Shown here one piece after another: positions 2,207 to 57,275 of a DNA stretch of 64,000 nt. The notes beneath the pieces were generated by a model. That model saw only the letters and a program-made list of their open reading frames with translations. It had not been told where the DNA came from and did no database searches. Numbering within the stretch: position 1 is the stretch's first letter; the number at the start of each line of letters is the position of its first letter. The translations under genes were made by a program, and so were the position numbers. The stretch covers positions 248,001-312,000 of the IMG/VR virus record IMGVR_UViG_3300032770_000001, one strand, 5' to 3'.

Positions 2207-3224
2207 AATCGACTACTTCATTCACGATGAGATGTTGAAGGATCGGGCGCTCGTCCGTTCTATTGTCATCCGCGATGTTACTGCCGATGACGCGGAGCAG
2301 AAGTTGGCTCAGCATCTCGGTTTCGACCGCACGTTCACCGTCATCCGCTCCTACCGCTTCTACAAGAAGCTGACAGCCGAACCCAAGAAGAAAGTCTACA
2401 AAGCAGTTGATGAACTGCTGTCGGCGAAGAAGGCCATTGAAGTCATGACGGAGATCGAGAATCGCAAGGCTCCAATTGTCATTCGCCCCGAAGACCTGCA
2501 AAAGGAAGAGCGCGTTGCCAAAGTCATGGACGCAATCGCTGCTGTTGATCCAACCACGCTGCCTCCCGATCATCCGGAACATGTCTGCTCTGACGAGTGT
2601 TACGACATCGTGGAAGTCGCACCCAAGGACGTGAAACTGCCTGCTGAATATTTTGACACGTCCGATTGTTCTGCTGGTCGTCCGGCACCCATGCCAACGG
2701 CTCCAACGGGAACTTGTGAGGCAACTGCCGCCGCGATCAAGCTGCTATCCACGCTGAACGCCTGCAAGTGGCATGGCGAAAAGTACGTCGATCAGGATAC
2801 GGGTCGATGCACCGCTCTCGACTCCGGTTCTGAGTACCTGAAAACCCTGTACAGTGCGAACTTCTATCCGACGAAGGCGTTGCCGAAAGAGACGGAAGTC
2901 CGCACGGCATTCGGCGGCCCGGTTGAACATTACGCGGCAGCCGAAGCCGCCGCACTGTCTTTTCCAGATAAACCAGTGGTGCCGACGCAGCCTGCTGTGT
3001 TCGATGACAACGATCTGGCTGCCAAGCTGGACGAACTTGCGCCAATTATCCATCCTCCGGCAAAGACGGAATCGCCGTTCGAGGTTGGTTCCGAGTTTCC
3101 GGCTGAGGAAGTTGTGCAAGAAGTTTTGACGGGTCACAAGAAGGGTGCCCTGTTTGCGGCTGGGGCGGCGATCATCGCGATCCTCGGCTGCGTGTACGTT
3201 TACCTTCACTATTTCGCGAGGTAG
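2136..3224 (+). CDS. hypothetical protein with C-terminal membrane anchor (start uncertain)
   Basis: long ORF, Pro/Ala-rich middle, terminal hydrophobic helix ALFAAGAAIIAILGCVYVYL. Confidence 0.7.
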   Translation: MEGMYTRMPESKPKRKQDKQRPYRIDYFIHDEMLKDRALVRSIVIRDVTADDAEQKLAQHLGFDRTFTVIRSYRFYKKLTAEPKKKVYKAVDELLSAKKAIEVMTEIENRKAPIVIRPEDLQKEERVAKVMDAIAAVDPTTLPPDHPEHVCSDECYDIVEVAPKDVKLPAEYFDTSDCSAGRPAPMPTAPTGTCEATAAAIKLLSTLNACKWHGEKYVDQDTGRCTALDSGSEYLKTLYSANFYPTKALPKETEVRTAFGGPVEHYAAAEAAALSFPDKPVVPTQPAVFDDNDLAAKLDELAPIIHPPAKTESPFEVGSEFPAEEVVQEVLTGHKKGALFAAGAAIIAILGCVYVYLHYFAR

Positions 3225-3532: not shown

Positions 3533-4081
3533 GTGAGGGGTGATGTGAATTACTACATCGTCGAAGCGTCCCACCTATTCCGGGCTGGGGACAAATTCCA
3601 AACACAATTTTTCGTTGTGGACGTTGTTGGCTTTCTGAACCGAGAGTATTTCGATTCCAGAGAGTCTAAAACAATTGTTCTCCACGGCTCCGTAAAAGCG
3701 GAGCAGGCGGACCGTTACGCCGCCGCGTTAGAGCGCCATGATGTGCGGGTCATCCGCATGAAACCGATTGCCAGTATGACGGGCAACGGTAAGTGGTATT
3801 TCAAACCGACTTGGTACTGCCACAGGATGATGGGTACCGATATTCCGAAAGGAAATCGGGTTGTACTTGTGGGTTTTCATAACCCGCGCTACAAAACCTT
3901 CATCGAAAAGTACGTGAAGGATTTTGAAATTTCAATGGCTGCGTTCAAAACCCCGTCGAAAAAGCAGGGCTGGATGTCCATTCCGGAAGATTTCAAGCCT
4001 CTTCTCAAGCACGCCATCGATCTCGACGAATGCGCTGCCAAAATCAAGGCGGAATTCCGCCGCAATCGCAGTAGTAAATAG
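3533..4081 (+). CDS. hypothetical protein, possibly a degenerate NYN/LabA-like fold
   Basis: alternating alpha/beta pattern; catalytic acidic residues not clearly present. Confidence 0.45.
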   Translation: MRGDVNYYIVEASHLFRAGDKFQTQFFVVDVVGFLNREYFDSRESKTIVLHGSVKAEQADRYAAALERHDVRVIRMKPIASMTGNGKWYFKPTWYCHRMMGTDIPKGNRVVLVGFHNPRYKTFIEKYVKDFEISMAAFKTPSKKQGWMSIPEDFKPLLKHAIDLDECAAKIKAEFRRNRSSK

Positions 4082-6416: not shown

Positions 6417-6851
6417 ATGAAACGAACCGCGTTGATTTTCCTGATTGTGGGGTTATTCGCAGCCGCCGCGCACGCCGCGACTGTTCACGTGCTCATTCCG
6501 AACTACGACAGCTACAGCCAAGGCATGATCTGCGTCGTCGATCAAGAGTACAACTCCCAGTTCGAGAACCTAATCCATGCCAGCGATTTCAGCGTCAGTC
6601 GCACCAACAAGAACTCTGCGCTCACCTTGATGGGCTTTTTCAAAGATGTCGATTTGAATGCCTGCTATGTTCCGAAGGGAACCTCGCAGCATGTCGATGT
6701 GCCGAACGCTGAGACGGTCTATGTCGTGACTATCGTGATGAAGGTCGCAAACGGAGCGGCGACTAACGTGTACTGGAACATCACCAACCTGAACACTGTC
6801 GGCATTGTCGGCGATAATCAGTACGTGACCGTGGACGCCCCGGCGCTATAG
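6417..6851 (+). CDS. secreted hypothetical protein
   Basis: Sec signal MKRTALIFLIVGLFAAAAHA. Confidence 0.75.
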   Translation: MKRTALIFLIVGLFAAAAHAATVHVLIPNYDSYSQGMICVVDQEYNSQFENLIHASDFSVSRTNKNSALTLMGFFKDVDLNACYVPKGTSQHVDVPNAETVYVVTIVMKVANGAATNVYWNITNLNTVGIVGDNQYVTVDAPAL

Positions 6852-6858
6852 GAGCCTT

Positions 6859-7314
6859 ATGAAATCGTTTTCGGTACTCACCCTGATGTTCGTTTTGTCC
6901 TTGGCGGCTGTGGCGCAGATGCCTCAGCTACTCCCCCCGCCTCCCCCCGTGGTGCCTTCGGCTCCGGTAGTGACGCCTCCTCCCGCAATGATTCCAGCAT
7001 CGCCCAACAACCCGGCTGCCGTTTATCCCCCGGACAACGTCATCGTGGTCACCGTGAAGCTGTTTGACTCGGATAACTACTGGTACGGTTCACAGTTCGA
7101 GTTGACGAGCACGGTGAATACGGACATCTGCGTGATGCCGTATGTGGTGCCCGGTTCTGCAAGCAACGTCATCGGTTCTGTGGTCCAGATGATGCCGATG
7201 AAGGCATTCGAGAAAAACGTAAACATCGGGCAGTACAAGACGGCTGATGAAAATCAACCGTGGAGAGTCATCGTGAAAGCGAAATGGCGCAAAGGCAACT
7301 GCGCCGACAAATAG
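6859..7314 (+). CDS. secreted Pro-rich hypothetical protein
   Basis: signal peptide ending AVA-Q; poly-Pro linker; AGGAG RBS. Confidence 0.75.
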   Translation: MKSFSVLTLMFVLSLAAVAQMPQLLPPPPPVVPSAPVVTPPPAMIPASPNNPAAVYPPDNVIVVTVKLFDSDNYWYGSQFELTSTVNTDICVMPYVVPGSASNVIGSVVQMMPMKAFEKNVNIGQYKTADENQPWRVIVKAKWRKGNCADK

Positions 7315-7322
7315 GAGAATTC

Positions 7323-7961
7323 ATGAAACGCACATTGATTATTGTTCTGCTCCTGCTGACTGCCAGCATTGCATGGGGTCAGACCATCGGCGATCAAATC
7401 AACGATCTGACCAAGCAACTCCAAGATGCTCAAGCCGCGTCAGAAAGCAACGGCGCAAAGATCAAGAAGCAAGCCGCCAAGCTGGACGACATCAAATTCG
7501 CTGCTGAGGCATACAAGAAGCAGAGCGCCCGTTTGCAGAACGACATCAACGATCTCAACATGCGAATTCAGCAGCACAATAACAACCGCTGCACCGAAAC
7601 CTGCGATCAAAATGGCGGCAACTGCACGCACAACTGTGGTGCGTACAACGCGGAATCGGCGTCCCTCAACAACGAAGCGGCCTCGTTGCAGCAACAAGGG
7701 CAGCAACTCGATCAGATTCAGCAGACCGTTACTCAGCAATCACAGGAGTGGGTTGCGGAGACGAAAGAATTGCTGGCGGAAAATGATCGCCTGAACGCGC
7801 TCATCGCCAACATCCAATCGCGACTCGCTGACCTACGCGGTCAGTACGATCAGTGTCGGGGTTCCATTCCGGTGACGTGTGACGCTCCGAACGATCCAAT
7901 CCTCAACGAGAAGTGTGAGAAAATGCACGCTTCTTGTGGTCGGCTGTTCGACGGAAACTAA
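7323..7961 (+). CDS. secreted coiled-coil, Cys-containing protein
   Basis: AGGAG RBS before ATG 7323; signal MKRTLIIVLLLLTASIAWG; Gln/Asn-rich coiled coil with Cys clusters. Confidence 0.75.
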   Translation: MKRTLIIVLLLLTASIAWGQTIGDQINDLTKQLQDAQAASESNGAKIKKQAAKLDDIKFAAEAYKKQSARLQNDINDLNMRIQQHNNNRCTETCDQNGGNCTHNCGAYNAESASLNNEAASLQQQGQQLDQIQQTVTQQSQEWVAETKELLAENDRLNALIANIQSRLADLRGQYDQCRGSIPVTCDAPNDPILNEKCEKMHASCGRLFDGN

Positions 7962-8085
7962 TGCGAAAACTCGACAACAATTTTACGGCAGCGGTACGGC
8001 GACTATGGCCTATTGGGATCGTTTTCGCCATCGTCCTTGGCGTGATAGTATCGTTTGCAGTGGCTTGGAGCCGCTAGGAGAAAAC

Positions 8086-8259
8086 ATGAAATTCATTCGC
8101 AACGTCGGATGGTGTATGTTCTTCATCGGGATCGGCTGGTCGATTCGCAGCTTTTCCGATCCTAGCTACAACCTCGGTGCGGCAGTGATGGGCGGTCTTT
8201 TCGGCTTGGCTATCGCTCTCGGCTCCAACTACGTTATCAACAAACGAGCGGCAAAATAA
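8086..8259 (+). CDS. small two-TM membrane protein
   Basis: AGGAG RBS and two hydrophobic segments. Confidence 0.6.
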   Translation: MKFIRNVGWCMFFIGIGWSIRSFSDPSYNLGAAVMGGLFGLAIALGSNYVINKRAAK

Positions 8260-9080
8260 TGTCTAACAGGCCAAAGAACGATGCTCTCGGCGACCGGATG
8301 AAGCGGTACGAAGACGTTTATCGTTTCCGTCTCCCCCGTCGCACTTACACCATTGTTCGAGTTGATGGTCGTGCGTTCCACACGTGGACGAAAAGATTGC
8401 AGCGCCCATACGATCTCGAACTGATCGATTGCATGAACGCAGCCGCCCTTGCCCTCTGCGAAGAAGTTGCCGGAGCCCGGTTCGCCTATGTGCAGTCCGA
8501 TGAGATCAGTCTGCTGGCGACCGACTTCGACCTCACGACCACACAGCCGTGGTTTGATGGTATCGTGCAGAAGTGGTGCAGCGTAGCGGCATCTATCGCG
8601 ACGATGGCATTCAACGAAAAGGTGAGACACTACCGTAACTGCGTTGATGGTTCGATGCTCATTAGCAAAAAAGAACCCAACGCAACGTTTGATGCTCGTG
8701 TGTTCACCATTCCTGACCACGTGGAAGTGGCGAACTATTTCGTCTGGCGGCAGCAGGACGCTGAGCGCAATTCGGTCGCGATGTTGGCGCAGCATTATGC
8801 CAGCCATAAAGAACTGCATGGCAAGGGCCGGGAAGAGCAGCATGAGGTCATCTATAAATACGGCGATAACTGGGCAAAGCACCCCGTTCGTTTTAAGCAC
8901 GGTGCAGTTGTACGTCGTCATGTTGAATCTCTCTACTCAACGACCGCTTTCTCAGGTGGGTGGGCGGTTGATGATGCAACGCCGAAGTTTACGCGCAAGC
9001 GTGCGTACCTTGAGAACCTGATCCCTATTGCATGGGAAGGCGATTTGATTGAGCGCAAAGCCAAAGCGGAGGGTGTATGA
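8259..9080 (+). CDS. Thg1-like protein (tRNA-His guanylyltransferase / 3'-5' polymerase)
   Basis: VRVDGRAFH, YVQSDEISL, FDARVF, YFVWRQQDAERNS. Confidence 0.93.
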   Translation: MSNRPKNDALGDRMKRYEDVYRFRLPRRTYTIVRVDGRAFHTWTKRLQRPYDLELIDCMNAAALALCEEVAGARFAYVQSDEISLLATDFDLTTTQPWFDGIVQKWCSVAASIATMAFNEKVRHYRNCVDGSMLISKKEPNATFDARVFTIPDHVEVANYFVWRQQDAERNSVAMLAQHYASHKELHGKGREEQHEVIYKYGDNWAKHPVRFKHGAVVRRHVESLYSTTAFSGGWAVDDATPKFTRKRAYLENLIPIAWEGDLIERKAKAEGV

Positions 9081-21529: not shown

Positions 21530-22364
21530 TGGCAAATTACATCCATGTAGAAGCGAAGGGCGGGGGCACCGAGGACATCGATTTCGGTTTCACGACCGAA
21601 GAAGACCCCATCGATGTAATCAAGAAGTGGCGTGCCGAAGGTGGGATTGACACCGGAACCTCTCAATCAGGCAGGACACTCCAGACGGGGTCATTCATCC
21701 CGTGGCATAGGATTCGCGATATAAAGTTTGAGCGAAATTGGAAGAACACGTATCAGGGGGACGGCTTCTCATGAGGATGATTACTGGCTACATTGTTGCC
21801 GATCCGAGCAAGCTCCCACCGGGCACCTGTCAACGCTGCGGTGGTTGGTCACCGGGCTACGGGCCGTGCCATGATGGTGTCACCGGGATCGAGATGCATC
21901 ACGCAGGCGGCGAAGTCCGTTGCGCGATCTGCGGTCGTTGCGGCGGCACCGGGAAAGAGCTATACTGGAAACGCATTCCACAATGGCGTTGGTACAAACC
22001 ACAGACATGGGGCAAAGGTTGGTACGTGGACAACACAGGCACCGTCCAGAATCCACGATTCGGGCAGGAGTATTATCCATGAAAGAACGCACCTGTTTTT
22101 GTGAACTCATCAACAGCGGTATGGTGGATGGCAGGAATCCTCCCCTAGTATGTCCGGAGCATCCAAGAAATTTCAGCATTCCGCCTGAGGGATACGAGCC
22201 GCCCAAACTCCACAAGTGGCAGTTCTGGTTTAGCAAGCACGCACTGTGTTGGGGCGACCGGAAAAGCGGAACTACCTACCACGAGATCGGATACCTGTGG
22301 GTCTTCGTGATCGTGTGGGGCATCGGACATTTCGTCGTCCTGCCGCTCCTCCCAAAATAAATTG

Positions 22365-22396
22365 TTGACAGTTTTCCGACTTTCTGGTATTAGTAT
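22365..22396 (+). promoter_or_regulatory. sigma70-like promoter of tRNA array 1
   Basis: TTGACA 22365-22370, then TGGTATTAGTAT; nearly the same element precedes array 2. Confidence 0.75.
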
Positions 22397-22418
22397 AGTA
22401 GTAGGAACACAAACTCGA

Positions 22419-22496
22419 ATGGTTCGCATACACGCATTATCGTCGTCCTCAAGTAGCTCCCGTAGCGGGAGCGGCGGCGTTGGTGTGTGCTTGTAA
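22419..22496 (+). CDS. attenuator leader peptide 1 (MVRIHALSSSSSSSRSGSGGVGVCL)
   Basis: 25-codon ORF with ATA, TTA and the run TCG TCG TCC TCA AGT AGC TCC; overlaps alternative hairpins; matches downstream tRNAs. Confidence 0.85.
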   Translation: MVRIHALSSSSSSSRSGSGGVGVCL

Positions 22497-22532
22497 ACAC
22501 TTGAAAACAAGCAAGTAAGAAACACCGATGAA

Positions 22533-22566
22533 GCCGCCTAGAAACTTGGGCGGCATTTGTGTTTTT
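22533..22566 (+). terminator. attenuator terminator of tRNA array 1
   Basis: GCCGCCTAG-AAAC-TTGGGCGGC followed by ATTTGTGTTTTT. Confidence 0.8.
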
Positions 22567-22602
22567 AGGGTAGTTTAATGGTATAGCTGGTATTGATATA
22601 CC

Positions 22603-22965
22603 ATGGAGTGCCAATATCACAGATGCGGTAAGGAACTCATCGGCAGGCAGACGAAGTTCTGCTCTCCGAACTGTAAGAACAAAAACAATGTTCACCTTAG
22701 CCGTAGGCGGATGAAGCGTCGAGCAGTCGATTATCTCGGCGGAAAGTGTGTTGGGTGTGGGTATTCCAGATGTCTGGATGCCTTGGAATTCCACCACAAC
22801 TGTGATGAAAAAGAGACTGAAGTTTCAAAGATGATCGCCAATAACAGACCTTGGGAGGTCATCTTACAAGAATTGAAAAAGTGTGAGCTTAGGTGCGCCA
22901 ATTGCCACGCTGAGTATCATACATTAGGTGAGTTGGGAGAGAGGCTTATCCCGCTCGGTTGCTAA
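22603..22965 (+). CDS. HNH endonuclease (free-standing homing type)
   Basis: GGKCVGCGYSRCLDALEFHH...ELKKCELRCANCHAEYH; stop lies in the tRNA-Ser(GCT) anticodon loop. Confidence 0.85.
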   Translation: MECQYHRCGKELIGRQTKFCSPNCKNKNNVHLSRRRMKRRAVDYLGGKCVGCGYSRCLDALEFHHNCDEKETEVSKMIANNRPWEVILQELKKCELRCANCHAEYHTLGELGERLIPLGC

Positions 22966-23018
22966 CCGAGAGTCCCCCGCGAGGGGGACCGCAAGTTCGA
23001 ATCTTGCACTCACCGCCA
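22927..23018 (+). tRNA. tRNA-Ser(GCT)
   Basis: GGTGAGT/ACTCACC-G-CCA; CTCGG-TTGCTAA-CCGAG; long V arm. Confidence 0.95.
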
Positions 23019-23031
23019 AGTTTTGAAGTTT

Positions 23032-23121
23032 GGTGAGTTGGGAGAGTGGTTTAATCCGCCACGTTGGAAGCGTGGAGCACCCGTAAGGGTGCCGCAAGTT
23101 CGAATCTTGCACTCACCGCCA
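23032..23121 (+). tRNA. tRNA-Ser(GGA)
   Basis: CCACG-TTGGAAG-CGTGG; long V arm; GCCA end. Confidence 0.95.
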
Positions 23122-23135
23122 AATTTTTGAAGTAC

Positions 23136-23232
23136 GGTGGGGTTGGTACATGTGGCTTAGGTCCGCTCGTCTTGAAAACGAGTATACTTCAGAGATGGAG
23201 TATTGCCAGTTCAACTCTGGCTCCCACCGCCA
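23136..23232 (+). tRNA. tRNA-Ser(TGA)
   Basis: CTCGT-CTTGAAA-ACGAG; long V arm; atypical D arm. Confidence 0.9.
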
Positions 23233-23237
23233 AGTTT

Positions 23238-23333
23238 GGAGAGGTTGGTACATGTGGCAAGTCCGCTCGCCTCGAAAGCGAGTCACGGGGTTAATCACCC
23301 CGTGTGCAGGTTCGACTCCTGTCCTCTCCGCCA
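23238..23333 (+). tRNA. tRNA-Ser(CGA)
   Basis: CTCGC-CTCGAAA-GCGAG; long V arm; GCCA end. Confidence 0.92.
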
Positions 23334-23341
23334 TTTTACGT

Positions 23342-23419
23342 GCGCACGTGAAGGGAATTGGCATACCTTTCCCACTTAAAACGGGAAGCTTGTGGGTTCA
23401 ACTCCCACCGTGCGCACCA
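23342..23419 (+). tRNA. tRNA-Leu(TAA), short variable loop
   Basis: GCGCACG/CGTGCGC-A-CCA; loop CTTAAAA. Confidence 0.85.
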
Positions 23420-23424
23420 AGTTT

Positions 23425-23519
23425 GGGGGAGAGCACTGGCTGTGCGGCTGGGCCTTATAAACCCGGAGTAGCTCCTGATTAGAGCAGACGGTGGGGTTCG
23501 AATCCCTACTCCCCTACCA
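23425..23519 (+). tRNA. atypical tRNA-Ile(TAT)
   Basis: GGGGGAG/CTCCCCT-A-CCA; loop CTTATAA; 5-nt D loop; long V arm. Confidence 0.75.
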
Positions 23520-23549
23520 ATTTCTTCCTTCCTGTAGTATCATTCCAGC

Positions 23550-24056
23550 ATGGAACTCACCGACCGCGAATACTATCGAGCGCACATGGCGGAATATGCC
23601 AAAGACACGATGGTTCTGTCTTTCACGAAAACCAATCATCCCAGTTATCAGGCGATTCTTTCAATGGGCTCCCTTGCAGTTCCATTCTTACTTGAAGACG
23701 TGCAGTCACAGCACCCAGATGGATCATGGACGCCGGGAGAGCGGCAGTTCTCTTACTGGGGCGCAACTTCGTTGCTCTGGCAAATCACGGCAAAGTCAAT
23801 TAACACACCGCCTGCTCCAATTCTGCCGGAGAAGGATCGTGGTCGGCTGGCTCCGATTCGCAAGTTGTGGGTGGACTGGGGGATCGCGAATGGCTACCTA
23901 ACGCCGAATGACCCCAAGATTCCTCTTCGTTTCAATCAGGTTCACCGCTTTGTGCCGAAGCGGTTCTTCGGGCTCCGCAATTACATCTGGCGTCTGACCA
24001 CGCTGCCGAACAAGCATCGCATGAAACATTCATGGGACTACTGGAGAGCGATTTAA
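23550..24056 (+). CDS. hypothetical protein
   Basis: 168-aa ORF directly after a TG-TAGTAT element. Confidence 0.65.
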   Translation: MELTDREYYRAHMAEYAKDTMVLSFTKTNHPSYQAILSMGSLAVPFLLEDVQSQHPDGSWTPGERQFSYWGATSLLWQITAKSINTPPAPILPEKDRGRLAPIRKLWVDWGIANGYLTPNDPKIPLRFNQVHRFVPKRFFGLRNYIWRLTTLPNKHRMKHSWDYWRAI

Positions 24057-32980: not shown

Positions 32981-33919
32981 ATGAAGGTTCTGGAACAACT
33001 CAAGGCGAATAAGTTCCCCTACGCGGGGAACCTGATCCACCTGTTCAAGGCTGGCTCCGAACTCCACGGTGCCAAGGTCGAGGGCAAGCAGGATGAGGAT
33101 TGGATGGGTGTGTACGTCGAGAGCCCCAACATGGTGATTGGGCTGGACGAATACCCCCACTACGTTTGGTCATCGGCTGGCGACCACGACAAGAACAAGC
33201 CGGGGGACATGGACATCACTCTTTACAGCCTGCGCAAGTGGGTCAAGCTGGCGTGCACGGGGAATCCTACGATCCTCGGCTGCCTGTTCGCTCCCAATGT
33301 GCTGGATAACGCGCATTGGAGCAAGGTTGTGGCGAAGAAGGATTTGTTCCTCGCCAAGTCCGTGGCTGAGCCGTTCCATGGTTTCGCCGATCAGCAGCTT
33401 AAGCGGGTGCTCGGCGAGAAGGGCAAGGGCAAGCATGGTCAGCGTCCCGAACTGGAGCAGAAGTTTGGGTACGACACTAAGGCTGCCATGCACGTGCTGC
33501 GGCTCCTCGGTGAGGGCGTGGAATTGTTGATGGCGGGTAAGATCACCTATCCTCGTCCCAACACCAAGATTCTGATTGACTGTCGGCAGGGCAAGTTTGA
33601 TTTGCCGTCTGTCAAGGGAATGGCGGATATTCTCTTTGCCGATCTCGAACGGGCTCGACGCGAATCCGGACTGCCGGAGGAGTGCGACCGTGCGGGAGCT
33701 TCTCAGTTCTTGACGGATTTCTACCTTGACTACTGGCAGCAACAGGAATCGCAGATGAACCGCGTTCTAGCGAAGGGAGTAAATCTTGCTTCCCGCTGGA
33801 TCGCGGGACACCTGCGCGTGTGCCCTCTGACTGACGGTCATCCGGCGTGGGAAGAGTGGAAGGAAGAAGATGTCGTGAAGATCGCCATGATCGATTTGGC
33901 GATGCGGAGCAGTGAATGA
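32981..33919 (+). CDS. Pol-beta superfamily nucleotidyltransferase (RNA-repair/YcgL-like)
   Basis: GSELHG...DEDWMGVY, GNPTIL, YDTKAAMHVLRLL. Confidence 0.85.
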   Translation: MKVLEQLKANKFPYAGNLIHLFKAGSELHGAKVEGKQDEDWMGVYVESPNMVIGLDEYPHYVWSSAGDHDKNKPGDMDITLYSLRKWVKLACTGNPTILGCLFAPNVLDNAHWSKVVAKKDLFLAKSVAEPFHGFADQQLKRVLGEKGKGKHGQRPELEQKFGYDTKAAMHVLRLLGEGVELLMAGKITYPRPNTKILIDCRQGKFDLPSVKGMADILFADLERARRESGLPEECDRAGASQFLTDFYLDYWQQQESQMNRVLAKGVNLASRWIAGHLRVCPLTDGHPAWEEWKEEDVVKIAMIDLAMRSSE

Positions 33920-35520: not shown

Positions 35521-35553
35521 TTGACAAACCGACTACCGATATGGTATTAGTAG
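35521..35553 (+). promoter_or_regulatory. sigma70-like promoter of tRNA array 2
   Basis: TTGACA 35521-35526, then TGGTATTAGTAG; AT-rich sequence upstream. Confidence 0.75.
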
Positions 35554-35572
35554 TAGTGAGCTTGAGAAATTC

Positions 35573-35668
35573 ATGACCTTCATGACAGCCAAATCGAGCC
35601 GAAAGCATCAGCGCCGGAATAATCGCTGGTTCGGCACGGGTCTGTTCTCTGAAGGGTGGGGCGCTTAA
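35573..35668 (+). CDS. attenuator leader peptide 2 (MTFMTAKSSRKHQRRNNRWFGTGLFSEGWGA)
   Basis: control run AAA..CGA AAG CAT CAG CGC CGG AAT AAT CGC TGG matches downstream Lys/Arg/His/Gln/Asn/Trp tRNAs; alternative start at ATG 35582. Confidence 0.82.
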   Translation: MTFMTAKSSRKHQRRNNRWFGTGLFSEGWGA

Positions 35669-35695
35669 AGCCTAGAAACCCAAGAGATTAACGAG

Positions 35696-35729
35696 ACCCG
35701 GAGCCAAAAGGCTTCGGGTTTTTTGTTTT
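35696..35729 (+). terminator. attenuator terminator of tRNA array 2
   Basis: ACCCGGAGCC-AAAA-GGCTTCGGGT followed by TTTTTGTTTT. Confidence 0.9.
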
Positions 35730-35746: not shown

Positions 35747-35825
35747 AGGGGCGTAAGACTATCTGGCGTCGTCGGCTGGTCTCCAAAACCATGCAGTGGG
35801 GGTTCAAATCCCCCCGCCCCTGCCA
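35747..35825 (+). tRNA. tRNA-Trp(CCA)
   Basis: AGGGGCG/CGCCCCT-G-CCA; loop CTCCAAA. Confidence 0.9.
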
Positions 35826-35826
35826 T

Positions 35827-35914
35827 TGGGCGATGGTGTAATTGGCAACACACTTGGCTCTGAACCAAGGGACTGATAAAGCTTGTGGAGGTTCGAGTCC
35901 TCCTCGCCCAGCCA
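35827..35914 (+). tRNA. tRNA-Gln(CTG) with extended variable region
   Basis: TGGGCGA/TCGCCCA-G-CCA; CTTGG-CTCTGAA-CCAAG. Confidence 0.88.
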
Positions 35915-36028
35915 ATATTGCAATAGGACTGGATACTTGCCGAGAAAGGGTACGGCGTTCGCGTCGGAGAGTATTTCGGGTGTCGAGAAGCCAGCCTTAC
36001 GGCTACAATCCGTGAAAGCCGTTTCGAT

Positions 36029-36105
36029 GGTGGGCGTAGTTCAACTGGTAGAACGCAGGATTGTGGCTCCTGTAGTTGCGGGTTCGAATCCCGTCGCCCA
36101 CCCCA
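36029..36105 (+). tRNA. tRNA-His(GTG), encoded G-1
   Basis: CAGGA-TTGTGGC-TCCTG; G-1:C73. Confidence 0.95.
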
Positions 36106-36116
36106 AGTTTAGATGT

Positions 36117-36192
36117 GGTGTCATTAGCCAAGAGGTAAGGCAAGAGGTTGTGGCCCTCTCATGCGTCGGTTCGATCCCGACATGACACCCCA
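36117..36192 (+). tRNA. tRNA-His(GTG) second copy, encoded G-1
   Basis: AGAGG-TTGTGGC-CCTCT; G-1:C73. Confidence 0.92.
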
Positions 36193-36230
36193 AGTTTTGA
36201 GGAGATAGCAGATTGGATCGACATAGTAAC

Positions 36231-36306
36231 GGGCTTATAGCTCAGAAGGAAGAGCACTGGAATCCGAATCCAGAGGTCGGCGGTTCGAGTCCGCCTAAGC
36301 CCTCCA
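36231..36306 (+). tRNA. tRNA-Arg(CCG)
   Basis: CTGGA-ATCCGAA-TCCAG; GGGCTTA/TAAGCCC. Confidence 0.92.
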
Positions 36307-36317
36307 GAGTTTTGCAA

Positions 36318-36464
36318 GTGATCGCTGGCAGTCCGATTGATTTTGACTGCCCTCTTTGCGGCAAGCCGAAAGGCGTACCCTGCAAAGTCAGGATCGTGGA
36401 AGAGCAGATCGTAGAGATCGACTTCCATCTTGACCGCAAAAAGTTGACAAGATTGTCCGCATAG
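36318..36464 (+). CDS. small zinc-finger protein ending inside tRNA-Arg(ACG)
   Basis: CPLC..PC..H; the TAG stop is tRNA positions 8-10. Confidence 0.5.
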   Translation: MIAGSPIDFDCPLCGKPKGVPCKVRIVEEQIVEIDFHLDRKKLTRLSA

Positions 36465-36531
36465 CTCAACTGGATAGAGCGCGTGCCTACGAAGCATGAG
36501 GTTGGGGGTTCGAGTCCCTCTGTGGACACCA
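36455..36531 (+). tRNA. tRNA-Arg(ACG)
   Basis: CGTGC-CTACGAA-GCATG; canonical D and T arms. Confidence 0.95.
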
Positions 36532-36536
36532 TATCA

Positions 36537-36611
36537 GGGGTGTATTGTCGGTTCGAATCCGGCTGGTCGTGGGTTTCACGATCATAGGCTCAAATGGTCA
36601 ACCAACGCCCC
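36537..36611 (+). ncRNA. circularly permuted tRNA-like RNA (YrlA/Y-RNA-like module)
   Basis: closing stem GGGGTGT/ACGCCCC; T arm GTCGG-TTCGAAT-CCGGC; loop-closed acceptor stem TGGTCGT/ACGATCA; D-like arm. Confidence 0.7.
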
Positions 36612-36622
36612 GTCGTTTTTAT

Positions 36623-36709
36623 GCCTCCGTGTCGGCAACTGGATGCCACCCTCGCTACGAACGAGGAGCCCGAAAGGGAATGCAGGTTCGAGTCCTGTCG
36701 GGGGTTCCA
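36623..36709 (+). tRNA. atypical tRNA-Arg(ACG) with long variable arm
   Basis: CCTCG-CTACGAA-CGAGG; V arm CCC-GAAA-GGG; TCCA end. Confidence 0.82.
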
Positions 36710-36920
36710 TTTTGAAGTATTGAAGAGTATGAGCAGACTTGAAGAGTTGTACGCGCAGTTGGAAAAGACGGAGCCCGGATCGCCGGAATCGAAAACAATA
36801 GCGGAAAAGATTCTGGAAGAGGTCTTCGGCGGCGTCCCGGAAGGGAAAGAAGGCGCGACTGTTCATGCTCCGGGTTGTAAGTGTGGTTGGTGTTTGATGG
36901 GAGATACAAAGTTTTAACAC

Positions 36921-37007
36921 TGGGATGTAGACCGTAATTGGTAGCGGGCGTGGCTGTTAACCACGTGCAGAAATGCCTTGTAGGTTCGAGCCCTACCGTC
37001 CCAGCCA
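36921..37007 (+). tRNA. tRNA-Asn(GTT) with long variable arm
   Basis: CGTGG-CTGTTAA-CCACG; V arm GCA-GAAA-TGC. Confidence 0.88.
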
Positions 37008-37013
37008 GATTTT

Positions 37014-37089
37014 TCCGGGGTAGCTCAGCGGTAGTAGCGTCCGGCTGTTAACCGGATGGTCGCAGGTTCGATCCCTGCCCCCGGAGCCA
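37014..37089 (+). tRNA. tRNA-Asn(GTT)
   Basis: TCCGG-CTGTTAA-CCGGA; canonical. Confidence 0.95.
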
Positions 37090-37346
37090 AGATGTAAACG
37101 TGCGGTTGGGGAGCGGAGCCCTCGGCGAGGGTGGAAAGCCTAAACTCCGCTCCCCGCTGTGGGGGCTGGGTCGCCTGTATAGCGCCACTCCTCATGCTTA
37201 GGGCACGGGATGTCGTTTTCGAAGACTTCTAGGATTGGAATTGGGATGTGGCACTCGCAAAGCAGGATCGCAAAGTAGCGTTCCTCACCGTCTTCGGTTT
37301 TTGCGTAGGCACCACAGACCTGCATACTTAAAGAATACCAAAGTTT

Positions 37347-37423
37347 GGGTGCGTCGTATAGCGGCTGATTATATTCCCCTCTTAAGGGACTTGACGTTGG
37401 TTCAAATCCAACCGCACCCACCA
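37347..37423 (+). tRNA. tRNA-Lys(CTT)
   Basis: GGGTGCG/CGCACCC-A-CCA; loop CTCTTAA. Confidence 0.9.
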
Positions 37424-37443
37424 AGTTTGTGGTATTGTGTAGT

Positions 37444-37605
37444 ATGGCTTTTACCAAGGAACAACTCGAAGCACTGGCTGCTCCATTGCGGCATGTGATT
37501 TTCGACAAGGACACCATCGCGTACCTTGAATGGGTTAGAGATAACCCAAACGAGTGGGCACAGATGATGCAGCAGCGCGATAAAGAACGACAATTGGGGG
37601 GTTAG
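37444..37605 (+). CDS. 53-aa hypothetical protein ending inside tRNA-Lys(CTT)
   Basis: MAFTKEQLEALAAPLRH...QLGG; the TAG stop is tRNA positions 8-10; TGG-TATTGT element just upstream. Confidence 0.55.
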   Translation: MAFTKEQLEALAAPLRHVIFDKDTIAYLEWVRDNPNEWAQMMQQRDKERQLGG

Positions 37606-37671
37606 CTCAACTGGCAGAGCAGGGGCCTCTTAAGCCTCAGGTTGCGGGTTCGACTCCCGTGCCCCTCACCA
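37596..37671 (+). tRNA. tRNA-Lys(CTT) second copy
   Basis: GGGGC-CTCTTAA-GCCTC; canonical D and T arms. Confidence 0.93.
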
Positions 37672-37941: not shown

Positions 37942-38012
37942 CGTACCGTAGCTTAGTTGGCAGAGCGTCCGCCTTGGAAGCGGAAGACGCAGGTTCGAAT
38001 CCTGTCGGCTTT
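37942..38012 (+). pseudogene. tRNA-Pro(TGG) pseudogene
   Basis: intact D, anticodon (TCCGC-CTTGGAA-GCGGA) and T arms, but the acceptor stem pairs only 3 bp and there is no CCA. Confidence 0.7.
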
Positions 38013-42221: not shown

Positions 42222-42344
42222 TTAAAGAGACCATGAACACTGCAATCAATCTCGTCGCAATGGCCTGCTTCGTAGCGGGTATGGTCGTATTCTATCTTGC
42301 ACTGACCTCCCTTCCCCTCAGACGAAAACGTTAACCACAAACGT

Positions 42345-42428
42345 GGGGGCGTAGTCGGGGGGCTCTTCTAAAGCCTTAGCCGTAAACCGGAACTGCGAAT
42401 GCGAGTTCGAATCTCGCCGCCCCTTCCA
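42345..42428 (+). tRNA. D-armless tRNA-Arg(TCT)-like RNA
   Basis: GGGGGCG/CGCCCCT-T-CCA; GGGCT-CTTCTAA-AGCCT; canonical T arm; only 7-8 nt in place of the D arm. Confidence 0.7.
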
Positions 42429-43813: not shown

Positions 43814-46687
43814 AATGAGGGGGAGAAATCCCCCTCTTCTCTTCCCAAAACGACGGCGGTCGAGGTATTATTCCAATATGACTCGTCACCCTTCCGTCAT
43901 CGATGTCCGCATCAAAAACTCCGAGAACAACACGTTCTACTATTTCGCCGCACGCGAAGATCGCTTGAAGGCGTTTTACCAATTCATCGTCGCCGACCGT
44001 AAGACCGTTCCCGGCCCATTCATTCCCGGCATCTCCGGGATGGCACTGGAAGGAAGCAAGTGTCTTTTCACTAGCCAGTTCAACAAATTTCCATCCATGG
44101 ACGTGTTGGCATGGCTTCGCGATCAGCAGAAGACTTACCTCGGCGAATACCCGAATCCGAAAATCGAAATCCCGGAGATCGAGAACGCACTGGAACGTTT
44201 CGGTCTGGTAACACCACAGTTGCATCAAGACGGCAGCGGGGAAGAGATCGTAGTGGAGCCTGCATCGAATGCTGAATGAGTTGTTGCAGAAGCTTCGACA
44301 GTTGAAGCGAGATTACATCGCTGGTAAGCTGTCCAAGCAGGAAGTCGTCGATCAGATGGGGCTGTTGCTGCGTCAACGCGGCATGATGGCTCCGGATGCC
44401 ACGATGCATATCGAAGACTTGCCGGAGGAATTCTGGCTACCGTGCGACTGTATCCTGTGTCGTGCTGAGCGTGGCGAAGTGCCGCTGCCAGTAGACGCTG
44501 TCATGGAAGTCGAGGCTCTGCGTACCGCCTACCAGTTCGGGATGATGAGTAAGGTGGAAGCCTTGATGAAGATTCAAGTCGTATTCCGGCGTCACGGTGT
44601 GAGTGAAGCCGATGCGACAGCTTATTGGAAAAATCCAATGAACAAGAGGACGCCACACGACGTTGAAATCAAGCCCATGTCCGACAGTGAGAAGGATTTC
44701 TTCGCCGGGTTGGAAAAACAGATGAAGGACGTTCCAAAGGATGAAAAATGACTAAAGGTGCTTTAGAAGTTCTCCGTGTAGCCTTACGAAATATCTGTGC
44801 TCTCCCACAACCGGATGGACACGACTGTGATGACGACATGGTAATCGACACCCTGTCCAAGATGATCGGGGGCGAAATGTTTGGTTTTGAGGTTTGGGCT
44901 ACCCAAGGTCAGGGTGGGGTTTTGGATGAGACCTACCCAACGTTCGAAGAAGCTTTGGCTCACGTGGAGCAGCACAAGGGTGATGCTTCCTTCGGTATTA
45001 AATACCCCAACGGCAACTGGCATAAATGGGCATGAGAATCGCCAAGATCAAGTTCAGCGAAGAGCAGGTTCGAATGATGGTCGATGGTAAGACCGTCGTT
45101 GTGCGTACCACCGAGGGCGAGATGCATCTGACCATGGATCAGACTCGTGTTGAACTTCGCCGTGCCGCCGACAAGCTGAAGGACATCGGCAAAACCAAGA
45201 CCGGGTTCGAAGACCTGTTCGGTGACGGTTTCGATTTTAACGGCAAGAGTGGCGGATTCAAAGACATCTTCAACGACATCATGGGTAAGAAGAAATGAAT
45301 CTCGGTTACGGACTAATCGAACGCAAGAAACGATACACGCTGGAGGAAGTTCTTGCGTGGAAATATCCGGGCTTCAAGATCAAAAAGACCTACAGCGAAC
45401 GAGAAGTGCTGCGGATGAAGGGGATGCTGGGTGGAACCGGACTATATGCTGGTGCCCTCATGATCTATGATGACTGCCCTACTGAAGTGGGACACATCAT
45501 CGACCGTCAGCTTCGCAAGCACAACATGTCATTCAGTTTCCGGAAAGGTCAGCGTTCCAAGGTGGTTCAGCTTGATGACGCCAAGCCCTTGCCGACGAAT
45601 TACTTTTTCATAGCAGAGAAGATCATCGGAGAGGCATACGATGAATATTTACGACGAGAAGAACAACGGTCCGGTAACGGAAATCGCTGATCCCGGTTTC
45701 CGCGATCAGGACATCGAGGTCGGCGACGTAGTCACGATTGTGGCTCCCCCCATTCGACGCATGGGCGGCTGGTTTGCGCACCCGCATGTGGGGCGCTCCG
45801 GCAGGGTCGTGGATTACCAGCGACGTGCGAATGGCGATCCCTACGGTCGTGTGGTAGAATTGGCTGGGGGCGATCTCCGCAACGTTCGCGTCTGCGTATT
45901 TGATGACCGCGAACTTCGCAAGGGGCGGATGTAAAGGAAAAGAAAAAATGAGCGTTTCTCTGTACCGACGAATACGTCAAGCGGAAAGTCTGCGAAGCAG
46001 GTTGATTGGCAGGGTGAAGCGTCGTTGCGTGTACGAACCTCACACCATTCGGTGCTACTATCCCGCGAAACGCGGCTTCATTTACTGCCCACTGCACATC
46101 AAGGAAAATTTACAAGTGGCGCTCATATCGAGTACCATGAAACAAGCCCTTGATGCCCTCAGGGTGAAAAACAATCCTTGGGCCGTAAAGCGGCTCACCG
46201 AACGGGAGTAATCTATGTACGGAGCATTTCTCGAAACTCTAGCGGACATGGGCTTTCGCAGTTCTCTGGAAAAGATGGGAGCTATCCCCAAAGGTCCGAA
46301 ATCCAAGCCCCCGGCGTTGCCGCCCGATCCGATTCTTGAAGCCCTCGGCACTCTTCATATCTGCCCTGACTGCAAAGGCAACACGTTCATCATGGGACCG
46401 CAGGGCGGCATGAGTCAGAACATCAAGTGTGAGAACCGTGAGTGCGGCTCTGAGTTTTCCGTCGCTCCGTTCGAAGATGGGCAATGGCTTGATGTGCCCA
46501 TGATGGCGAAGCGCACCAACCGCAGTGAAGCGGATAGCATATCACTATACGGTTTTGGCTATGGACGATTTCATTCAAATTCCACTTCAACCTCTGCGAC
46601 TGTCTGAGTTGGACAGGCGGATGGAAGAAAGCCGACTGGCGCTGATACGCGACATCGTCAACGCTCTCGGAATACCACCGGAGTATT

Positions 46688-56919: not shown

Positions 56920-57275
56920 CCGTCTCTTAAGTTAGAGGCGAAGCCCGATCTGTTAATCTCTCGACCAACTGACTAAACACACGGGTGGAGTCTCTAAGGG
57001 GAGCACTGGATATGGAAATCCAATCGCTCCCCTTCTCTTTTTTGGTATTAACCGGGTATGAACACCATATTCCGGTGCGCAGAGCACAAACGATTCGAGA
57101 CACAACGAGAAGCCGAAGAGGAACTCCCCAAGATCGCCCTGCACGGCATGAGAAAGGGCGGCGGATCGTGGCGTTTACTTAAGGCATTCCAGTGCGGTGA
57201 CCACTGGCATGTGGGCCGAGATTGGAAGAGCCGCAAAAAACCCTCGTAAGTAGCTGAAAACACGCCAATAAAAAC

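Follow-up and report, generated by a model that had tools for sequence, protein, structure and literature searches.

A predicted leader-peptide attenuator upstream of tRNA genes in a giant phage

When and why phage tRNAs are expressed is an open question. The locus analysed here raises it in a specific form: why would a giant phage place, in front of a transcription stop signal, a tiny ORF built from the very codons that are read by the tRNA genes behind it? We addressed this in a 64-kb window (64,000 nucleotides of a 455-kb phage genome), starting from an initial annotation which proposed that a Ser-run leader with rare ATA and TTA codons forms an attenuator ahead of four tRNA-Ser, a tRNA-Leu(UAA) and a tRNA-Ile(UAU). 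What had been observed is confirmed by our analysis, whereas the interpretation placed on it is only partly supported, for reasons detailed below.

The first step was to define the anatomy of the locus, all of which is on the + strand. Within 22365-22566, there is a sigma-70-like promoter, a short ORF, three mutually exclusive helices and an intrinsic terminator, in the right order and with the right spacing for an attenuator. The promoter (22365-22393) consists of TTGACA (22365-22370), a 17-nt spacer and a TG-extended -10 element TGGTATTAG with the hexamer TATTAG (22388-22393), and the likely start site, which is inferred, is the G of GTAGG near 22401. The leader ORF (22419-22496) has its ATG at 22419 and contains 25 sense codons, of which the initial annotation had listed the first 18, followed by a TAA stop at 22494-22496. 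ATA is codon 4, TTA is codon 7, and a run of seven Ser codons (TCG TCG TCC TCA AGT AGC TCC) occupies positions 8-14, with further AGC codons at positions 16 and 18. Downstream, ARAGORN identifies five tRNA genes (22927-23419), all with an encoded CCA: tRNA-Ser GCT (22927-23018), GGA (23032-23121), TGA (23136-23232) and CGA (23238-23333), and tRNA-Leu TAA (23342-23419). A sixth gene (23425-23519), which had been annotated as Ile(UAU), is detected neither by ARAGORN nor by the Rfam tRNA model RF00005 and is therefore not a canonical tRNA. It is nonetheless a conserved cloverleaf-like RNA, with a 7-bp acceptor, a D arm, a 5-bp anticodon stem with a 9-nt loop (rather than 7-nt) that has UAU at its centre, a long variable arm, a T arm, discriminator A and encoded CCA. 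In a consensus fold of six sequences (alifold), its acceptor and variable-arm pairs covary, but its amino acid identity was not established. As had been claimed, each of the six anticodons has an exact Watson-Crick codon in the leader (AGC, TCC, TCA, TCG, TTA and ATA).

One feature not mentioned in the initial annotation is an ORF encoding a 120-aa HNH homing endonuclease (22603-22965; phrog_2255, E = 1.7e-19), which lies between the terminator and the first tRNA and overlaps the first 39 nt of that tRNA. The attenuator is thus not directly adjacent to the tRNAs in this genome. The HNH ORF is preceded by cTGGTATTGA plus 6 nt plus ATG, a promoter-like motif (22588-22596) of the phage's own leaderless type, which could bypass the attenuator, so that the tRNAs may also be made independently of it. 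The HNH gene is inserted between attenuator and tRNAs in this genome only and is absent at this position in the four diverged metagenomic relatives of this locus (referred to as L051, L057, L058 and L061, with L051 grouped with L059), where tRNA-Ser(GCT) starts some 15-25 nt after the T tract. We also considered that 22567-22606 might be part of a split or intron-containing tRNA around the HNH gene, but no cloverleaf fits and no detector supports it.

Is the codon content of the leader more than chance? The ORF holds nine Ser codons plus the rare ATA and TTA, i.e., 11 of 24 codons are cognate to the six downstream genes, whereas such codons make up 5.7% of codons in the ORFs of the window (binomial P = 2.5e-8). 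ATA and TTA occur at only 2.1 and 3.2 per 1000 codons, respectively, although their rarity overstates their significance because AUA and UUA triplets are partly favoured by the need to pair with the GGUGUGUG strand. In a scan of all six frames of the 64 kb, the longest run of these codons (8) starts at 22437, within the leader. However, the idea that the use of five different Ser codons suggests sensing at the isoacceptor level is not supported. With this phage's Ser codon usage, 7-10 Ser codons cover all four decoding classes by chance with P = 0.36-0.59, which makes Ser codon diversity uninformative on this point. Isoacceptor-level sensing is not demonstrated.

Folding of the leader RNA with RNAfold shows that the pairings proposed in the initial annotation are real. 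The MFE of 22395-22575 is -67.4 kcal/mol (z = -5.0), and 0 of 200 shuffles fold as well. Region 1 (22431-22447), which overlaps regulatory codons 5-10, is the 5' strand of the protector helix, inside of which is a small hairpin GCUCCCG/CGGGAGC (22456-22472) that is conserved in the relatives. Region 2 (22473-22494), which ends at the leader stop codon, is a shared strand that pairs either with region 1 to form the protector or with region 3 to form the antiterminator. Region 3 (22507-22538) comprises ACAAGCA, ACACCGAU and GCCGCC, the last six bases of which are the 5' arm of the terminator. The antiterminator pairs GGCGGC (22473-78) with GCCGCC (22533-38), GUUGGUGU with ACACCGAU, and UGCUUGU with ACAAGCA. 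The intrinsic terminator (22533-22566) is a 9-bp stem with a tetraloop (22533-22554) followed by the T tract ATTTGTGTTTTT. An antiterminator unable to compete energetically had been named in advance as a reason to abandon the attenuator reading, but this is not what we found: the local energy of the 2:3 helix is -27.2 kcal/mol, against -15.9 for the terminator hairpin. Across this module and its four relatives, the values follow a classical hierarchy, with -25 to -38 kcal/mol for 1:2, -22 to -27.5 for 2:3, and -12 to -16 for 3:4.

Footprint-masked folding, which had also been suggested beforehand as a way to probe the model, gave a consistent picture. A ribosome with its A site on codons 1-14 leaves the 5' arm of the terminator paired to 22469-22478, within or just upstream of region 2, at the moment before the 3' arm is made, whereas with the ribosome on codons 15-25 the arm is free and the terminator forms. 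The same pattern holds in L051 and L057. At full-length equilibrium, the terminator often wins even with the footprint mask, and the model therefore relies on the kinetic order of folding, as it does for trp. Ser codons 16 and 18 lie outside the productive stalling zone. This behaviour was shown only in silico, not in vitro or in vivo. Simulated stalling at the regulatory codons thus leaves the 5' arm of the terminator held in the antiterminator.

A second module in the window, at 35521-35729 and, like the tRNA cluster behind it, on the + strand, provides an independent line of evidence. It has a near-identical promoter (TTGACA 35521-26, an 18-nt spacer and TATTAG 35545-50), and this motif combination occurs only twice in the window, each time upstream of a leader and a tRNA cluster, yet the two leader sequences are unrelated. 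The promoter is followed by a leader ORF (35573-35668), a protector (35584-35646), an antiterminator (35633-35705) and a terminator (35693-35722 plus T tract). Codons 10-19 of this leader (CGA AAG CAT CAG CGC CGG AAT AAT CGC TGG) cover all seven anticodons of the tRNA cluster behind it (35747-37671), which comprises Trp CCA (detected by Rfam only), Gln CTG, two His GTG, Arg CCG, two Arg ACG, two Asn GTT and two Lys CTT, with small ORFs interspersed, although the Trp codon lies outside the productive stalling zone. This run of 10 is the longest run of such codons in the six frames of the 64 kb, and none of 200 shuffles reaches 10. Cross-matching fails, with P = 0.9 for leader 1 against the second codon set and P = 0.24 for leader 2 against the first. 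The footprint pattern is reproduced in module 2 and in its single relative, L062, although the protectors are weaker (-22 kcal/mol, and -18 in L062). In all seven sequences, the antiterminator (-22 to -33 kcal/mol) competes with the terminator (-12 to -20). In contrast, no attenuator-like terminator precedes the third tRNA group, at 41-42.6 kb.

Conservation in the relatives, which amount to only 5 + 2 sequences from two clades when the modules of the window are included, points in the same direction. The relatives of module 1 and L062 keep the ORF, its stop position, its codon classes, and the protector, antiterminator and terminator layout, and the homologous -10 element TGGTATTAT is present in the module 1 relatives. 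The regulatory part is only 54-65% identical at the DNA level, and the peptide itself is poorly conserved, yet the Ser/ATA/TTA content is maintained, with ATA and TTA at non-homologous positions in the window compared with the relatives. All three indels inside the ORF are 3 nt, whereas the three outside it are 1, 1 and 2 nt. The stretch GGTGTG(T/A)GCTTGTAA in region 2 is invariant across all five module 1 sequences but for one base in L061. Pairing is also conserved: four one-sided substitutions in region 1 all keep pairing with the invariant partner strand, and there is a compensatory C-G to U-A change in the terminator of L057. There are exceptions, since the top antiterminator helix has one mismatch in L058 and works only in a shifted register in L057. 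Whether the leader is translated is left undecided by what we observed. On the one hand, none of the seven leader ATGs is preceded by a convincing Shine-Dalgarno sequence, only by a conserved A/C-rich stretch, although other genes of these phages do have GGAG-type sites. On the other hand, the frame-preserving indels, the conserved stop, and an in-frame stop 15 nt upstream in L057 that fixes the ATG as the start provide indirect support; transcript, ribosome-profiling and host data were lacking.

A search of INPHARED phages with 22300-23600 found only a distant tRNA-Leu match in Acinetobacter phages and no relative. A promoter-pattern scan of IMG/VR gave 37 loci, of which only the source contig (455,708 bp) and an identical 105-kb contig were true hits, and a leader-derived pattern found only self in IMG/VR and nothing in GTDB genomes. 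Scans of IMG/VR with neighbouring proteins (a 168-aa protein and RlaP) gave only self hits plus one RlaP locus with 29% identity and no tRNAs. Homologues of the 168-aa downstream protein led to contigs that either lack tRNAs (L043-L047) or are too short to reach a leader (L048 and L049), but they did validate the sixth gene. A looser pattern based on the -10 element and start site, in a search that was not exhaustive, returned spurious matches, among which only an unrelated phage (L066, L155) had tRNAs downstream, without a leader; the presence of further modules in the 455-kb genome outside the window was therefore not established. Internal promoter-like motifs were seen before ORFs inside the clusters of relatives.

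Taken together, the most likely explanation, which we hold with good but not full confidence, is that this is a ribosome-mediated transcription attenuator of the trp/his type redeployed to control tRNA genes. In this model, transcription starts at the sigma-70-like promoter and a ribosome begins translating the leader. If it reads quickly through the ATA, TTA and seven-Ser stretch, it would run on over region 2 to the stop codon, the terminator would form, and transcription would end before the tRNA cluster. With no ribosome at all, region 1 would pair with region 2 and the outcome would be the same. If the ribosome stalls in codons about 4-14 because aminoacyl-tRNAs for those codons are scarce, it would cover region 1, leaving region 2 free to pair with region 3, which includes the 5' arm of the terminator. 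The terminator could not form, and RNA polymerase would continue into the six tRNA genes that decode exactly those codons. The result would be negative feedback on decoding capacity, a tRNA-supply homeostat, for which a plausible physiological trigger is shortage of the host's rare-codon tRNAs, or loss of host tRNAs during infection or through tRNA-targeting defence. Our analysis directly shows the sequence features, the alternative helices and their energies, the codon enrichment, the second module and the conservation, whereas the start site, leader translation, stalling, regulated termination and the physiological signal are inferences. Nothing here shows that the leader is translated or that termination responds to it. 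The core of the initial interpretation, a leader-peptide attenuator whose regulatory codons match the tRNA genes downstream, is supported by every computational test that we could run.

Among the alternatives, the one that survives best, although we consider it unlikely, is that the same attenuator senses amino acid supply or charging, for example serine starvation, rather than the abundance of particular tRNA species, the tRNA genes being simply one more starvation-responsive output. A stalled ribosome cannot tell a missing tRNA from an uncharged one, this is the established logic of the trp, his and thr leaders, and the Ser codon diversity is what chance would give. However, making more tRNA does not relieve amino acid starvation, leader 2 mixes six amino acids in ten codons that map one-to-one on the downstream anticodons, which is hard to read as an amino acid sensor, and the single rare ATA and TTA codons match single dedicated tRNA genes. 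Slightly less likely still is that promoter, short ORF and terminator form a self-contained small gene, a Ser-rich micropeptide or a small RNA, with a constitutive terminator, and that the tRNAs are transcribed from other promoters such as the HNH promoter-like motif or internal promoters. This would be consistent with the terminator being thermodynamically favoured in most full-length folds and with the promoter-like motifs mentioned above. However, it explains neither why two unrelated leaders each hold the window's longest run of codons cognate to the cluster immediately behind them, nor why region 2 can pair with both region 1 and the terminator arm in all seven sequences. Furthermore, in the four relatives the short distance between T tract and first tRNA leaves no room for another promoter, and it is codon class, not peptide sequence, that is conserved. 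A translation-independent riboswitch-like element, in which uncharged tRNA (as in T-box elements) or a phage protein binds the leader RNA and the ORF is incidental, is very unlikely: although alternative terminator and antiterminator structures are also a hallmark of T-box and protein-dependent attenuators, there is no T-box or other Rfam match even at permissive thresholds, the frame-preserving indels, conserved stop and frame-specific conservation of codon class point to translation, and there are many different "specifier" codons rather than one. Chance, i.e., a low-complexity Ser-rich frame next to an ordinary terminator, is effectively refuted by the codon content, the coincidence of the window-wide maxima with both leaders, the fold z-score and the conservation, even though short ORFs and GC-rich hairpins are common and part of the sequence is constrained by pairing.

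How does this element compare with known systems? In the leader-peptide attenuators of amino acid biosynthetic operons (E. coli trpL, hisL, thrL, leuL, ilvL and pheL), there is likewise a promoter-proximal short ORF enriched in regulatory codons, a protector, an antiterminator and an intrinsic terminator, with a stop codon placed so that a ribosome that finishes the leader masks region 2, and the ribosome's position chooses the fold, which for the phage element is an inference. As in thrL and ilvL, more than one kind of codon would be sensed. The differences are that the downstream genes are tRNA genes in a phage rather than genes for biosynthetic enzymes or synthetases, so that the product would directly relieve the stall it senses, that the regulatory codons map to individual anticodons, and that there is no clear Shine-Dalgarno sequence. 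Neither leader matches an Rfam family (Trp_leader, His_leader, Thr_leader, Leu_leader and others) at gathering or permissive thresholds. Because the downstream genes are tRNAs, we do not assign the element to any named leader family. The pheM-pheST attenuator, which controls phenylalanyl-tRNA synthetase, and the putative leader peptides upstream of aminoacyl-tRNA synthetase genes in Deinococcus deserti (PMC4007540) apply leader-peptide attenuation to a component of the translation apparatus that serves the sensed codons, and the Deinococcus cases show that such leaders can work without classical SD-led initiation. However, those systems control the charging enzyme for one amino acid, whereas here it would be the adaptor RNAs themselves, several species at once. 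T-box riboswitches also couple tRNA status, codon by codon, to a terminator/antiterminator choice upstream of translation-related genes, but they bind uncharged tRNA directly, need no ribosome, and have a conserved specifier loop and T-box sequence, none of which is present here (no Rfam T-box hit in the window or in either leader at E <= 1 or E <= 0.1). Finally, polycysteine leaderless short ORFs act as Cys-responsive attenuators in mycobacteria (bioRxiv 10.1101/834739), where a short ORF with a run of one codon type senses decoding and controls downstream genes in an organism rich in leaderless or SD-less initiation. However, the targets there are cysteine-metabolism operons, and the reported mechanism is not a classical three-helix terminator switch upstream of tRNA genes.

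A bolder possibility, which our evidence does not rule out but which we regard as somewhat less likely than not, is that giant phages carry codon-resolved decoding sensors, in which each tRNA gene cluster sits behind a leader peptide that is a miniature test pattern of exactly the codons the cluster decodes, so that replacement tRNAs are transcribed only when those particular host tRNAs run short. Shortage could come from rare-codon demand, from phage-induced host shut-off, or from host anticodon nucleases and other tRNA-targeting defences. Cluster 2 covers Lys, Arg, Asn, His and Gln, and several of these are classic anticodon-nuclease targets, a point that was not tested here. It has been stated that tRNAs are widespread targets of bacterial immunity and that some viruses encode their own tRNAs to counter this (PMC12409363). 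If so, this would be the first case of tRNA genes under leader-peptide attenuation, and an inducible counter-defence.

Bacterial and phage tRNA genes are thought to be controlled at promoters, by growth rate and stringent control, and by processing, while leader-peptide attenuation is known for amino acid biosynthesis and a few synthetase genes. Full-text literature searches found no report of it upstream of tRNA genes. The architecture described here suggests a simple search rule for annotating similar elements in other large phages, namely promoter, short ORF, terminator and tRNA cluster, scored by codon-anticodon match, and the element could also serve as a compact, programmable sensor of the availability of chosen tRNAs. 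For the phage itself, a leader whose codons mirror the anticodons downstream would be a direct feedback loop on decoding capacity, with the tRNAs probably made only when ribosomes have trouble reading those codons, and it would give a mechanistic answer to the question of when and why phage tRNAs are expressed.

The window belongs to a 455,708-bp IMG/VR viral contig (IMGVR_UViG_3300032770_000001, also Ga0335085_10000040), an identical stretch of which lies on a 105-kb contig, and it has a GC content of 53.8% with genes almost all on the + strand. ARAGORN finds 19 tRNA genes in it and Rfam adds at least one more, while no close relative exists among deposited phage genomes. The element described in the initial annotation is real, and its sequence reads as that annotation gave it. 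It consists of TTGACA at 22365-22370 followed after 17 nt by a TG-extended -10, TGGTATTAG (hexamer 22388-22393), an ORF from ATG 22419 to TAA 22494-22496, and a hairpin at 22533-22554 followed by ATTTGTGTTTTT, which was recovered by a terminator scan. Downstream lie tRNA-Ser GCT, GGA, TGA and CGA and tRNA-Leu TAA, and then a sixth gene at 23425-23519, and each of the six anticodons has its exact codon in the leader. What the initial annotation did not mention is a 120-aa HNH endonuclease ORF at 22603-22965 (phrog_2255, E = 1.7e-19), which lies between the terminator and the first tRNA and overlaps the first 39 nt of that tRNA, tRNA-Ser(GCT). Mobile-looking ORFs sit at different places inside or before the tRNA clusters of each related contig as well: an HNH ORF (phrog_2255) in L062 (3178-3591), a PDDEXK_5-family ORF in L051 (2360-2737), and an ORF in L057 (about 1219-1900) that looks like GIY-YIG by eye, although this assignment was not tested.

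The sixth gene is missed by both ARAGORN and the Rfam tRNA model. It is nevertheless conserved in five other contigs (L048 325-420, L049 336-430, L051 3574-3669, L057 2079-2174 and L058 8978-9073) and folds as a cloverleaf with covarying acceptor and variable-arm pairs. It has a 9-nt anticodon loop with UAU at its center, a long variable arm whose stem covaries (GCUC/GAGC, GCGG/CCGU, GCAC/GUGU), discriminator A and an encoded CCA. A long-arm tRNA with an AUA-reading anticodon is unusual, and we have no data on whether it is charged with Ile, Leu or something else. tRNAs of about 84-88 nt for Gln (35827-35914), Arg ACG (36623-36709) and Asn (36921-37007) in the window, and at 2793-2878, 3043-3130, 3884-3967 and 4171-4256 in L062, carry an extra arm, which is not the bacterial norm for these tRNAs; in the window, the Arg(ACG) and Asn genes lie beside normal-length copies with the same anticodon. 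In L051 (2990-3069, same as L059 4328-4407), ARAGORN reports between Ser-TGA and Ser-CGA a tRNA with a 6-nt anticodon loop and a two-base "anticodon." The leaders of L051 and L061 have a TGC codon inside the Ser run, but we found no link between the two. A possible further tRNA-like sequence in the window (42343-42420) ends in a T-arm and CCA but is not called by ARAGORN, and at 37946-38008 there is a separate, truncated tRNA match (Rfam model positions 5-66) with a TGG-type anticodon loop. CCA is encoded in every tRNA gene and is usually followed by AGTTT or AATTT (for example at 23016-23024, 23230-23238, 36103-36110 and 37421-37428), which may be a shared processing signal.

The codon content of the leader and the fold of its RNA both depart from chance. 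Codons read by the six downstream genes make up 5.7% of codons in the long ORFs of the window but 11 of the 24 leader codons (binomial P = 2.5e-8), and two of these codons, ATA and TTA, are rare, at 2.1 and 3.2 per 1000, although AUA and UUA triplets are partly favored by the need to pair with GGUGUGUG. In a scan of all six frames of the whole 64 kb, the longest run of these codons (8) starts at 22437, inside the leader. The RNA from 22395 to 22575 folds at -67.4 kcal/mol, z = -5.0, and none of 200 shuffles does as well.

A further finding is that the window contains a second, independent module. The same promoter motif (GTTGACA, then 14-19 nt, then GGTATTAGTA) occurs only once more in the window, at 35521, where it is followed by a 31-codon ORF (35573-35668), a strong terminator at 35693-35722 plus a T tract, and a cluster encoding tRNA-Trp CCA, Gln CTG, His GTG (two), Arg CCG, Arg ACG (two), Asn GTT (two) and Lys CTT (two). 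Codons 10-19 of this leader are CGA AAG CAT CAG CGC CGG AAT AAT CGC TGG, i.e., ten consecutive codons that are all cognate to the cluster and together cover all seven anticodons. This is the longest run of such codons anywhere in the window in any frame, and none of 200 shuffles reaches 10. The two leaders are not alignable beyond the promoter, and each matches only its own cluster, since leader 1 against the codon set of the second cluster gives P = 0.9 and leader 2 against the codon set of the first gives P = 0.24. This within-genome covariation of leader codons with downstream anticodons is the strongest single argument. Not all phage tRNA clusters are built this way, as an unrelated viral contig (L066 and L155, IMGVR_UViG_3300009705_000049) has a similar -10-like motif 25 nt upstream of a Leu-TAA/Lys/Met/Arg/Asn tRNA cluster, with no leader ORF or terminator.

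Scanning metagenome contigs with a 20-nt stretch of the sixth gene, together with look-ups of neighboring proteins, recovered five useful contigs, four of which are diverged relatives of module 1 (L061, L058, L057 and L051, the last of which is the same as L059), while one is a relative of module 2 (L062). The flanking protein is about 60% identical over its matching part and the tRNAs are 62-92% identical. All relatives have a homologous TG-extended -10, a leader ORF, a terminator and then the same tRNA families. The regulatory half of the leader is only 54-65% identical in DNA between the window and its relatives, yet every leader keeps 8-11 Ser codons of all four decoding classes, one ATA and one TTA. 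In the alignment, the ATA and TTA codons of the window are not positionally homologous to those of the relatives. All three indels within the ORF are 3 nt long, whereas those downstream of the stop are 1, 1 and 2 nt. The stop codon and the last codons (GGT GTG TGC TTG TAA) are invariant in four of the five sequences, L061 having AGC in place of TGC, and in L057 an in-frame stop 15 nt upstream fixes the ATG as the start. In L062 the core CGA AAG CAT CAG CGG AAT AAT CGC TGG is kept, with one codon deleted in frame.

In all seven sequences, region 2 can pair either with the regulatory-codon region (protector, 1:2) or with a downstream strand that ends in the 5' arm of the terminator (antiterminator, 2:3). 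Local energies in the module-1 family are -25 to -38 kcal/mol for the protector, -22 to -27.5 for the antiterminator and -12 to -16 for the terminator (3:4), while the corresponding values in module 2 and L062 are -22 and -18, -33 and -28, and -19 and -20, respectively. The initial annotation had specified that an antiterminator unable to compete would refute its reading, and these energies show that the antiterminator does compete. We then folded the nascent transcript up to just before the 3' arm of the terminator while masking a 29-nt ribosome footprint. A ribosome with its A site on codons 1-14 of leader 1 leaves the 5' arm fully or almost fully paired to 22469-22478, within or just upstream of region 2, whereas on codons 15-25 the arm is free and the terminator forms. 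The same division is seen in L051 and L057, in module 2, where codons about 5-16 are productive, and in L062. At full-length equilibrium the terminator often wins, and the model therefore depends on the order of folding during transcription, as it does for trp. In addition, the top antiterminator helix has a mismatch in L058 and needs a shifted register in L057. Across relatives there is one compensatory C-G to U-A change in the terminator, and four one-sided changes in the protector all keep pairing with the invariant strand, while module 2 shows a G-U to C-G change in its terminator.

The reading also has weak points. None of the seven leaders has a convincing Shine-Dalgarno sequence, and they share only an A/C-rich stretch before the ATG, whereas other genes in these phages have GGAG-type sites and many appear to be leaderless, with TGGTATTAT followed by ATG after 5-7 nt. 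A recurrent TG-extended -10 (TGGTATTAT, TGGTATTGA or similar) lies 5-7 nt before an ATG in the window (22588-22605, 37430-37448, 43863-43880 and 57043-57060), in L051 (about 3685), in L057 (about 2190) and in L058 (about 8584 and 9088). This suggests that many genes of this phage group are expressed as leaderless mRNAs, which may hint at the host group; no host is known, and there are no expression data. In this genome the HNH insertion brings such a leaderless-type motif (cTGGTATTGA, then 6 nt, then ATG, at 22588-22605) downstream of the terminator, and cluster 1 may therefore also be transcribed constitutively. In the four module-1 relatives, by contrast, the first tRNA starts some 15-25 nt after the T tract, so their attenuators are not bypassed at that point, although some of them do have internal promoter-like motifs before ORFs deeper in the cluster.

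The interpretation in the initial annotation, a leader-peptide attenuator ahead of tRNA genes, is supported in its core but needs correcting in places, and we hold with fair but not complete confidence that this is a functional ribosome-mediated attenuator of tRNA genes. While the features, codon statistics, pairings and conservation are results of the analysis, the mechanism is one that we propose from them. It works like the trp, his and thr leaders and, among the systems known to us, it is closest in spirit to pheM-pheST and to the putative synthetase leaders of Deinococcus deserti (PMC4007540), where a translation component is the target. What sets it apart is that the output is tRNA genes, and full-text literature searches, which did not reach most papers in subscription journals and whose silence is thus not proof, found no report of a leader-peptide attenuator upstream of tRNA genes in bacteria or phages. 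The alternative that survives best is that the relevant signal is amino-acid supply rather than tRNA availability. Our analysis does not separate the two, but tRNA availability is favored because the output is tRNA, which does not relieve amino-acid starvation, and because leader 2 mixes six amino acids in a one-to-one map onto the anticodons. The additional claim in the initial annotation that the use of five different Ser codons implies sensing at isoacceptor level is not supported by that argument, since with the Ser codon usage of this phage 7-10 Ser codons include all four decoding classes by chance with P = 0.36-0.59; the better argument for codon-level design is the presence of single rare ATA and TTA codons and the one-to-one map in leader 2. 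The element is not a T-box, and it matches no Rfam leader family.

tRNA-related functions nearby fit a role in coping with loss of host tRNAs. An RlaP-family RNA-repair gene (Pfam E = 1.6e-21) lies at 32981-33916, 1.6 kb upstream of module 2, and L043, a relative, carries adjacent Pnkp-like and T4 Rnl1-like genes (6769-8832), which together suggest investment in tRNA repair. tRNAs have been described as frequent targets of bacterial immunity, which some phages counter with their own tRNAs (PMC12409363), but the link to the modules described here is inferred. In the mechanism that we propose, which is classical ribosome-mediated attenuation, fast decoding of the test codons would lead to termination before the cluster, while slow decoding would let transcription run into the genes for the very tRNAs that were limiting, the logic being that of a negative feedback loop on decoding capacity.
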